Shown piece by piece: positions 17,462 to 22,234 of a stretch of 64,000 bases of DNA (positions are counted from its first letter, which is position 1; the number at the start of each line of letters is the position of its first letter). A program made the position numbers and the translations under genes. Source of the stretch: Salpingoeca rosetta (taxonomy: Eukaryota; Protista; Choanoflagellata). The stretch lies in NCBI GenBank assembly GCA_033442325.1, contig JAWQFM010000007.1:166735-230734 (forward strand), written 5' to 3'. The notes beneath the pieces were generated by a model that saw only the letters and a list, made by a program, of their open reading frames with translations, searched no databases and had not been told where the DNA came from.

Positions 17462-20400
17462 ATGAGCCAGCAGAGTTGGAAGCAACAGCAGCAGCATGCT
17501 CAGCAACTGCAGGATGCTGTGAACGCATATTGGGTTGCACCAGAGGCGGACAGATCCACAGCCGTGCAGGGGGTGTGCCGCGTGTTTGAGACAGTCCTGG
17601 CCGACACGGGCTTTCCAGGCTTGAAACACCTCGTCGACACAGAGCTCAAATGGTCCCACCACTTTGCGACGCTGGTGTTGGATTGTGTGCAGTACCTGGG
17701 CGACGCCCTCATGCAAGAAGAGAAGATCGCTGGGAGGCGCCTTTCGACCAAGAAGAAGGGAAAGAAGGAGCCCCAGCGTGTCGATCACAACAACGGCAGC
17801 GAAGATGCCACCTCCACCACTACCACTACCACTAAAACTACCACTACCACTACCACAGCAGCGAACCACCAACCCGCCAGAACTGCCACCGTCACTGCTG
17901 CTGTGCCTACGCCTGCCGACGACACCTCAACCAAGGTTGTTGCCCGCCCTGCTGAGCCACAACAGCTTAGCGACACTGGCTCGACAACCCCCAAGCCTGC
18001 CCATGGCGACAACCACAACGACAACGACAGCATCAACGCAACGGCTGCTGCCACCACCACCACCACCACCACCAGCAGCAGCAGCGTCACGAACGCCGAC
18101 ACCAACGCCGACACCACCAGCGCCAAAGCAACAGCTGATACCATGGTCGACAAGGACGATGCCAACGCCGCCAGCAGCGCCAGTAGTGCCAACACCCAGG
18201 ACAAGAAGGAAAAGAGGAAAAAGAAGAAAAAGAAGAAAAAGAACAAGAAGAGCAAGGAGGCTGACAAGGTGCTACAGAGCAAGATCCAGGTGTGCCACGC
18301 CCTGCTCAGCTCACTCAGCGGCGCACACATCACGCCGCAAGCCAAGGAGAGCGCCGTGGTGCTGTGTGTCGCCGGCCTCCGCACGAAGATGCTTGACCCA
18401 ACGCTGATTGTGCGCATCGTGTCGACCTTTGGCGTGGCCCTCCCGCGTGACGTCGTGGCGGCGTTTGTGGCAGACAAGATTGGCGCGCGCCTGTCGCCAG
18501 AGGACGGCACGGTGCTGAAGCTCTTTGACCCAACATCGACCCGCCCCAAGCACGTGAGCGTTGCCGTGCGCCTCATGCTAGAGCTGGACATGGTGGACGC
18601 CATCGATCCATATGCGGTCATGTACCGGCTGGTGCAGCTTGATGTGTGGCCGCACCTCCAGACGTACGCTCGCGCCGTGGCCAGCAACAACCAGGCAGGG
18701 AAGGTGGAGCGCATTGTGAACATGCTGTACGCACGTGACCGGGAGCGCATGGCGTTCAAGCTCATCGACGCCGCCAACCTGCACGAGCGCTTCCCCAACG
18801 CACGCGAGCGCTACTGCCGCAACAAGATTGAGCACTTTGTCAGCAAGAACCTGTTTGACCTTGCAGCGGTGGCGGCGACAGGCAACATTGACCTCCGCAC
18901 GTACATGATCGACATGCTGGTGCAGCGCGGGCACATTGGAAAGGCGCACGACTACTGCCGCATGTGGGGCCTGGAGAGCGACTGCAACATTGATGACGAT
19001 AAGCTCAAGGCCTTTCACATTCGCCGCGCTCGGGAGTTCCTAACCCTGCCACAGCATCTGTACGACAGCCTGCTGTTTGTGCAGGATGCAGCGGGGCTGG
19101 CTGCTGCACGTGAGGTGCTGTTGCGGCCGTGGCCAGACGCGCGCGTGGCGCTGGTTGGACTCGACTGCGAGTGGCGGCCCGTGCTGCCGTCGTGGGCACA
19201 GCCGGATGGCCTGCGCAGGCGTAGTCGCAGGCACGACAGCGACAGGAGCAACAAGCATGGTGATGGTGCCAGTGGTGGTGGTGCTGCTGATGATGATGTT
19301 GATGATGACGATGGTGATGTTGATGTTGCTGATGATGTTGATGATGTTGCTGATGGTGAGGGGACGACTGTTGAGGATGGTGGTGAGGGCAGTGGCAAGC
19401 ATGATAACAACGCAAATGATGACAAGGACAACAACAACAACAACAACAACAACAACAACAACAACAACGATGACGATAACAACAACAACAACAACAACAA
19501 CAACAACAACAACAACAACAACAATAACCACGCGACCACCAGCGGCAAGGGCAGCTCGCCTTCCAGTGACAAAGCGCGACACCACAAGGAAGGGGAGGGG
19601 AAACAGAAGCAGCGCGTGTCGATTCTGCAGATTGCACGACACGATGCGCTAGTCATCCTGGACATGCTGGCATTGGAGCCGGCGCACTTCCACGCGTTTG
19701 TGACTGACCTGTTTGCAGACCCAGCCATCATCAAGGTTGGGTTTGCGTTTGACGGCGACATGAAGATGTTGCGCAAGACATTTCCCGACGCGGAATGCTT
19801 CTCCACCCTCCGATCGCTGCTGGACTTGCAGTCCTTTCGTCATGCGCTGACGTCAGCGGGTCCCAAGTCGGGCGGCCTGAAGGAGCTCGTGCGCCACTTC
19901 ATGCACAAACCGCTGGACAAGACGGAGCAGATGTCCAACTGGAACCGGCGTCCGCTCACGCCATCACAGCTGCACTACGCCGCCCTGGACGCGCACGTGT
20001 GCGTTTCGCTTGCAGAGCGGATGCTGCAGGCATTGGCGACCCGGACTGGCGGTCATGACGGCAGTGCTGGTGTGGTGGCAGGAGAGGTGGTGGAGGGTGA
20101 TGACGAGGGTAAGGAGGAACAGCAGTATGAGGGTAAGGAAGAGACGGGTGAAAGGGGTGTCGGTGTGGAGGGTGGGAAGCCCGGGAGCGCTGCGATGGAG
20201 AAAGAAGAGGACACAAGCGCAACCTCCCAAGATGAAGGCAGAGAGCCCGACACTATCACGGAGCAACAACACCAGCAGCAGCAGGAGCAGCATCAGCAGC
20301 AGCAGCAGCAGCAGCAGCAGCCAACACACTCGCTGCATGCCCTGGCGAAACAGCATGTTGTTGATGTGCACGCGGTGAGTGAAGAGCAGGAGAAGGCGCA

Positions 20401-22234: not shown

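Follow-up and report, generated by a model that had tools for sequence, protein, structure and literature searches.

An exonuclease, a YbaK-like domain and MUT7-C are encoded by one unspliced gene

We analysed a stretch of 64,000 nucleotides from the choanoflagellate Salpingoeca rosetta (GenBank assembly GCA_033442325.1, contig JAWQFM010000007.1, positions 166,735 to 230,734 of the forward strand), hereafter the window, in which all coordinates are given. The gene at 17462-22234 of its + strand encodes a Mut-7/EXD3-family protein in which a DEDDy 3'-5' exonuclease domain (EXO) is followed by a YbaK/ProX-like domain of the INS superfamily and then by a MUT7-C domain. The gene is real and is transcribed into a single mRNA without splicing. 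This three-domain architecture is old and catalogued, not new. An earlier reading of the letters of the window by a model (the original prediction) had placed the three domains in this order in one open reading frame (ORF). A Pfam scan bore this out, PF01612, PF04073 and PF01927 all matching above their cut-offs. The features of the gene are as follows.

17462..22234, + strand: complete, single-exon coding sequence of the Mut-7/EXD3 family (ORF list, first ATG, RNA sequencing)
17750-18290, + strand: Thr/Ser/Lys-rich low-complexity stretch, preceding the N-terminal helical region
18290..19135, + strand: N-terminal helical region common to the family (conserved columns in an alignment of 46 proteins)
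19136..20038, + strand: DEDDy 3'-5' exonuclease domain of RNase D/Mut-7 type (PF01612, TIGR01388)
19202..19612, + strand: Asp/Asn-rich low-complexity insert of ~135 residues, separating the Exo I strand from the one after it (translation)
20744..20869, + strand: N-terminal part of the YbaK-like fold, helices and a strand (residues 2-43 of the AlphaFold2 model, predicted local distance difference test (pLDDT) 87-98; aligned with the N-terminal ends of 1wdv and 2cx5 in the profile search)
20870..21127, + strand: Gly/Glu-rich and poly-Gln (CAG) insert splitting the YbaK-like domain (translation)
21125..21481, + strand: core of the YbaK/ProX-like (INS superfamily) domain (PF04073, Foldseek, column counts)
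21527..21958, + strand: MUT7-C, a reduced PIN-like fold with a four-Cys zinc ribbon (PF01927, Cys columns, Foldseek)
21989..22231, + strand: Gly/Asp/Glu-rich C-terminal tail, unconserved among orthologues (translation)

On the + strand, 1606 codons stay open between 17414 and 22234, and translation probably starts at the first ATG of this frame (17462), which gives a protein of ~1590 amino acids. In two stranded RNA sequencing (RNA-seq) runs every bin from 17369 to 22100 was covered, and the depth dropped before ~17369 and after ~22100. Virtually all read pairs had their first mate on the - strand, the orientation that RNA of the + strand gives in most stranded libraries. The stranded RNA-seq contained no splice joints within the gene, no reads connecting the flanks of the long repeats and no joint reads skipping the inserts at 19202-19612 or 20870-21127; reads were not placed inside the long repeats themselves, so these stretches are covered indirectly. 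Complete transcript-derived ORFs with the same three domains were found in Salpingoeca infusionum, S. urceolata and Helgoeca nana, and the genome of Monosiga brevicollis encodes the same architecture.

Several long repeats lie in frame within the ORF and Logan contigs end at them, as could be expected of an artefact produced by read-through from a neighbouring gene, by an assembly chimera, or by in-frame introns posing as low-complexity inserts. However, the same-strand RNA is continuous and free of splice joints, and the three domains recur together in complete transcript ORFs of three other choanoflagellates and in the M. brevicollis genome. Therefore, a chimeric gene model is very unlikely.

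The only RNA joint was of the 'opposite strands' kind, between CAA/TTG-type repeats at 18103-18126 and 22021-22044, and was present in both reads and contigs. It is most likely an artefact of repeat mapping or assembly and not a rearrangement. Dense (GT)n/(CA)n microsatellites lie beside the gene at 22260-22400, 22700-22990, 23375-23600 and 25440-25575, and an assembly gap (N) starts at 25576, right behind a (CA)n run.

The YbaK-like domain has the fold and the pocket motifs of bacterial editing factors

The Pfam family PF04073 (tRNA_edit) matched residues 1238-1345 (21125-21448) with 37.2 bits against a cut-off of 25.5 (E 3.6e-9), and in a six-frame search of the genome the fused domain scored 42.6 bits. 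Likeness to YbaK/EbsC in NCBIfam was weak and sub-threshold. An AlphaFold2 model of residues 1110-1525, built from 45 aligned sequences, had a mean pLDDT of 88.9. When compared with the PDB by Foldseek, its top matches were Thermus thermophilus ProX structures 2z0k/2cx5 (E ~1e-8; 9.6e-9 for 2z0k), with a root mean square deviation (rmsd) of 1.6 A over 118 columns. Haemophilus influenzae YbaK (1dbx), Escherichia coli YbaK (2dxa) and Aeropyrum pernix APE2540 (1wdv) were also recovered; the probability was 1.00 for 2z0k, 1dbx, 2dxa and 1wdv, and the rmsd ranged from 1.6 to 2.2 A.

The KSL lysine, GTMPPFG and GGG motifs named in the original prediction were all located, and its coordinates were right to a few bases. 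The lysine is K1244 (21143-21145), which aligned with the VKSL lysine of 2cx5. The pocket loop GYLPGTMPPFGH at 21293-21328 is of the type G-x-x-P-G-T-x-P-P-x-G-H, and GGG lies at 21398-21406. The extent proposed for the domain, 21130-21475, held for the core alone, since the fold begins ~125 residues ahead of the Pfam match (~20744-20869) and both inserts had been missed. The insert at 20870-21127, composed of Gly/Glu and a run of ~50 Gln, is in frame and missing from orthologues, and the AlphaFold2 model renders it disordered or as a single long helix.

Among the 45 aligned family members, G1294, P1297, G1298 and G1331 were invariant and the loop G-(Y/F)-x-P-G-(T/S)-x-P-P-x-G-H-R was strongly conserved. 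Mean pairwise identity was 0.31 in the YbaK core, 0.36 in EXO and 0.35 in MUT7-C, and 0.12-0.14 in the linkers. Judged by identity, the YbaK core is conserved about as well as both flanking nuclease-family domains. The pocket of the S. rosetta domain looks intact, with its lysine retained, and the binding of something in this pocket seems to be constrained everywhere.

The exonuclease site is complete and MUT7-C probably does not cleave

PF01612 (DNA_pol_A_exo1) matched residues 731-873 of the ORF with 74.1 bits against a cut-off of 23.6. In the NCBIfam scan, TIGR01388 (RNase D) gave a weak match (E 2.9e-12), far under its equivalog cut-off. The intact DEDDy set of the original prediction (DCE / D / YAALD) was recovered residue by residue: D584 and E586 (DCE, 19163-19171), D782 (exo-II, 19757), and Y855 and D859 (YAALD, 19976-19990). 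The D/E/D/Y/D columns were invariant or at least 90% conserved in two family alignments. The Asp/Asn-rich insert at 19202-19612 splits this domain, is in frame and is missing from aligned orthologues. Metal-dependent 3'-5' exoribonuclease activity has been demonstrated only in C. elegans MUT-7 and Nibbler (PMC11347159). The N-terminal helical region (18290..19135) had no Pfam match.

The last domain matched PF01927 (Mut7-C) at residues 1372-1515 (21527-21958) with 112.9 bits, above the Pfam cut-off, and Foldseek recovered the C-terminal domain (CTD) of C. elegans MUT-7 (8q66). Cysteines 1463, 1466, 1496 and 1499 (at 21800, 21809, 21899 and 21908) were kept in 43-45 of the 45 rows. The PIN-type acidic set is incomplete: D1376 and D1392 are present, and S. 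rosetta and the other choanoflagellates have Ser where 31 of the 45 rows have the Asp of L-T-R-D. From these columns, choanoflagellate MUT7-C probably does not cleave. The missing Asp fits the published view of MUT7-C, which contributes to RNA binding in the worm and human proteins and for which an RNA-binding rather than a catalytic role has been proposed (PMC11347159).

In ESM Atlas clusters, bacterial Mut7-C was seen fused to THUMP (79 members, mostly Myxococcota) and, in other clusters, to Ub/ThiS-like domains. THUMP binds the tRNA acceptor end, and the ubiquitin/ThiS-like partners of Mut7-C were predicted earlier to bind RNA. This suggests that Mut7-C has repeatedly been joined to modules binding tRNA acceptor ends. 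These fusions, with THUMP or with ubiquitin-like (ThiS/TGS-related) domains, resemble the S. rosetta protein in coupling MUT7-C to a small domain that binds RNA or acceptor ends, or is predicted to; they differ in their partner domains, in the absence of an exonuclease and in being prokaryotic.

Choanoflagellates, oomycetes and green algae have the architecture in common

A profile of the YbaK and MUT7-C part was searched against 1.84 billion representatives. It matched 6021 proteins at E <1e-3 and 73 at <1e-30, and dozens of proteins of 800-1400 residues aligned across YbaK and MUT7-C in a single stretch. Among the 46 long relatives, Mut7-C was detected in all, tRNA_edit in 45 and the exonuclease in 44 (E <=0.01). 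A word-index search among proteins of similar length returned three relatives, two of which, one of them with a product name in IMG, carried all three Pfam domains. With the YbaK and MUT7-C piece as query and candidates of 157-499 amino acids, the same kind of search gave no match, which is an effect of the length window and not absence. One short match (P0010) was considered as a two-domain protein of YbaK and MUT7-C and rejected as a fragment, as it begins at the edge of a 1033-bp contig.

The choanoflagellate members were M. brevicollis (XP_001750135, UniProt A9VBP0), S. infusionum, S. urceolata, H. nana and Barroeca monosierra, the last with a degenerate domain. Oomycete members were Aphanomyces euteiches, A. 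stellatus and Lagenidium giganteum, and green-algal members were Cymbomonas tetramitiformis and Sanguina aurantia. An ESM Atlas cluster of 74 proteins, mostly from Oomycota, had tRNA_edit in 97%. Vertical descent predicts choanoflagellate, oomycete and green-algal groups, and these were recovered in an unrooted maximum likelihood tree of the YbaK and MUT7-C region with supports of 99, 96 and 90, respectively (SH-aLRT, an approximate likelihood ratio test), the H. nana representative standing apart on a long branch. From this distribution we infer that an early eukaryote most likely already had the architecture and passed it on vertically, and that land plants and at least C. elegans have since lost it. 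A recent, choanoflagellate-specific horizontal acquisition was ruled out by the distribution and the tree.

The architecture does not hold as a novelty: the original prediction could not say whether other protists were known to have it, and it is widespread in protists and green algae and had been catalogued for oomycetes. Matelska et al. (2017, NAR 45:6995; PMC5499597) noted an aminoacyl-tRNA editing domain in Mut7 proteins of Saprolegnia and Aphanomyces. Such proteins also carry the product name "PIN domain/YbaK" in IMG. In the library searched, theirs was the only paper naming both Mut7 and aminoacyl-tRNA editing. Our literature search found no paper pairing EXD3 or MUT-7 with YbaK and none discussing the fusion in choanoflagellates or green algae. 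The 2024 structural study of MUT-7 mentions neither YbaK, deacylase, tRNA nor choanoflagellate (PMC11347159). The oomycete Mut7 proteins (PMC5499597) have the same three Pfam domains in identical order and align in a single stretch over YbaK and MUT7-C, but they carry Asn or Ser at the conserved lysine of S. rosetta and are free of its long low-complexity inserts.

The fused domain is provisionally nearest to ProXp-x

A profile of 39 fused domains was compared with all PDB sequences. The matches were as follows.

1wdv (APE2540), free-standing, A. pernix: 89.7 bits, full-length match
2cx5 (TTHA1699), ProXp-x: 89.2 bits, full-length match
2dxa / 1dbu, YbaK of E. coli / H. influenzae: 53.6 / 43.5 bits
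3op6, uncharacterised Legionella protein lpg1207: 49.7 bits
5znj / 2j3l, ProRS INS domains: 49.3 / 39.4 bits
1vki, 5vxb and 1vjf, ProXp-ala: 20-23 bits

The structure 2CX5 is labelled ProXp-x in a 2024 review of editing factors (PMC11295145). ProXp-x clears alpha-aminobutyryl-tRNAs and, less well, Ala-tRNAPro, and prefers tRNAs with A73 (PMC11295145). The ProXp-x factors (T. thermophilus TTHA1699, 2CX5/2Z0K; A. pernix APE2540, 1WDV) were thus the top matches of the fused domain in both profile and structure, and their Lys strand and loop of the type G-x-x-G-G-V-P-P-V-G-H are also found in it. They differ in being free-standing prokaryotic proteins of ~155 residues, whereas the S. rosetta domain lies inside a nuclease protein and is split by poly-Gln. 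The same review describes the INS superfamily as made up of single-domain proteins, with the INS domain of ProRS as the exception (PMC11295145).

The genome holds two tRNA_edit loci besides the fused gene. One encodes a free-standing INS-superfamily protein of 250 residues with a Gln/Glu-rich N-terminus (1474-2223, - strand, of its locus sequence), which scored 88 bits to PF04073. Its nearest solved relative is 3op6 (Legionella lpg1207), and it has 21% identity to the fused-domain profile; by these measures, it and the fused domain are of different subfamilies, and an origin of the fused domain as a recent copy of this protein is unlikely. The other locus has an ORF of at least 733 amino acids (997-3195, - strand, of its locus sequence) with a partial tRNA_edit match (profile positions 14-76), and may represent a third gene with an editing domain, interrupted by an intron or an insert. 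A recent copy of this second locus is likewise an unlikely origin of the fused domain.

The gene is retained in the absence of the RNA interference machinery

In the S. rosetta genome (55.4 Mb, 68 contigs), the gene described here is the sole Mut7-C locus. A search of the genome for the Piwi domain found none, and prokaryotic controls responded in the same search; PAZ, RdRP and Dicer_dimer were likewise not found, in searches run without a positive control. The earlier statement that core genes of RNA interference (RNAi) are missing thus agrees with our searches and with Richter et al. (2018), who reported that Argonaute and Dicer are absent from S. rosetta and M. brevicollis (PMC6040629). Both species retain the three-domain protein. 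Since it is kept without Argonaute and Dicer in both, a function independent of RNAi is well supported. Oomycetes, unlike S. rosetta, have RNAi.

Animal MUT-7/EXD3/Nibbler proteins share the N-terminal helical region and the DEDDy RNase D-like exonuclease, and also MUT7-C with its zinc ribbon, which drosophilid Nibbler lacks (PMC11347159), but act in small-RNA pathways that are missing from this genome. Bacterial RNase D belongs to the same DEDDy exonuclease family (TIGR01388) and has HRDC domains in place of YbaK and MUT7-C. RNase D trims the 3' ends of tRNA precursors.

A possible role at tRNA 3' ends

We regard as plausible, somewhat short of probable, a model, put forward in the original prediction, in which the protein docks or deacylates a CCA end and then trims it. 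The (aminoacyl-)adenosine at the 3' terminus of a tRNA, or of a tRNA-like CCA end, would be docked in the YbaK-like pocket. A 3'-5' exonuclease should be stopped by an amino acid esterified to the terminal ribose, and where the lysine is kept, as in S. rosetta, the pocket would hydrolyse this blocking ester. MUT7-C would supply RNA binding, and the tethered DEDDy domain would trim or degrade the freed 3' end, the folded domains being connected by flexible linkers. Such a job at tRNA ends would be independent of RNAi, which fits the retention of the gene without Argonaute or Dicer. The mechanism gains indirect support from the fusion of bacterial Mut7-C to THUMP and to ubiquitin/ThiS-like domains.

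Several observations weigh against this model, above all against its catalytic step. In the 45 aligned sequences, the K1244 column holds Lys in 33, Asn in 11 and Ser in one (A. stellatus), and the exceptions are the whole oomycete clade and S. infusionum. In B. monosierra the YbaK-like domain (residues ~773-890) has four pocket-loop residues deleted and E-S-G in place of G-G-G; it falls under Pfam detection, and EXO and MUT7-C are intact. In view of the clades with Asn or Ser and of the Barroeca deletion, lysine-assisted hydrolysis cannot be universal, and catalysis would not be required in all members. The loss of the lysine in about a quarter of the family thus weakens deacylation as a general rule. 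Two large land-plant clusters of the ESM Atlas contain the exonuclease and Mut7-C only, without the YbaK-like domain. According to the original prediction no such domain is known in animal Mut-7, and this is upheld for C. elegans MUT-7 by its published description: its N-terminal domain with EXO (1-625) and its CTD (633-910) are joined by a flexible linker, without a YbaK domain (PMC11347159). Because land plants and C. elegans keep EXO and MUT7-C without it, the YbaK-like domain is dispensable for core activity. A three-domain model of the S. urceolata orthologue had confidently folded domains and disordered linkers (pLDDT <50), with a predicted template modelling score (pTM) of 0.47. The protein thus looks like beads on a string, and no fixed geometry is predicted between the pocket and the exonuclease site. 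The assignment of the fused domain as nearest to the ProXp-x type is provisional, being drawn from profile scores against solved structures and not from phylogeny, and the genome has its two further tRNA_edit loci.

Much of this would also be expected if the YbaK-like domain were a non-catalytic accessory (pseudo-deacylase) offering a surface for RNA 3' ends or nucleotides, with substrates that need not be tRNA and could be precursors of ribosomal or small nuclear RNA, or small RNAs where RNAi exists. We consider this somewhat unlikely. In its favour are the replaced lysine in 12 of the 45 members, clade-wide among oomycetes, the degenerate domain of Barroeca, the loss of the domain from C. 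elegans and land plants, both of which retain EXO and MUT7-C, and the flexible tethering of the domains. However, the Gly/Pro pocket loops are invariant over very distant lineages, the conservation of the domain comes close to that of the catalytic exonuclease, and S. rosetta and 32 others have kept the lysine. We know of no general RNA binder of the YbaK fold. A non-catalytic role would nevertheless have a parallel in MUT7-C itself, seen as RNA-binding and not catalytic (PMC11347159). It is improbable that the domain is a true trans-editing deacylase acting independently of the nuclease, the fusion merely co-localising or co-regulating unrelated activities. Editing domains of the superfamily do act in trans as free proteins (PMC11295145), and the linkers here are long and disordered, but the order EXO-YbaK-MUT7-C is fixed and places the domain in the middle of two partners that work together in binding RNA and in catalysis (PMC11347159). 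Moreover, the genome already encodes a free-standing protein of the INS superfamily, and the retention of an old fusion in three major eukaryotic lineages suggests functional coupling.

Significance for the Mut-7/EXD3 family

MUT-7 acts in small-RNA amplification, and one survey described human EXD3 as unstudied. The editing field views YbaK-type factors as single-domain proteins, whereas the three-domain form is old and constrained. A further idea, which we hold to be doubtful, is that the ancestral eukaryotic Mut-7/EXD3 was a surveillance nuclease for aminoacyl-tRNA 3' ends, whose parts were a deacylase of ProXp-x type, a trimmer of the DEDDy family and MUT7-C as an RNA clamp; small-RNA trimming in animals would then be a later re-use after loss of the deacylase, and choanoflagellates without Argonaute and Dicer would still show the original function. 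The S. rosetta gene offers no new architecture; its value lies in providing a convenient model, S. rosetta being genetically tractable, and in showing that the fusion occurs in the sister group of animals. The persistence of the three-domain form without RNAi in the closest relatives of animals leads to the hypothesis that the original substrates of the family may have been (aminoacyl-)tRNA 3' ends.

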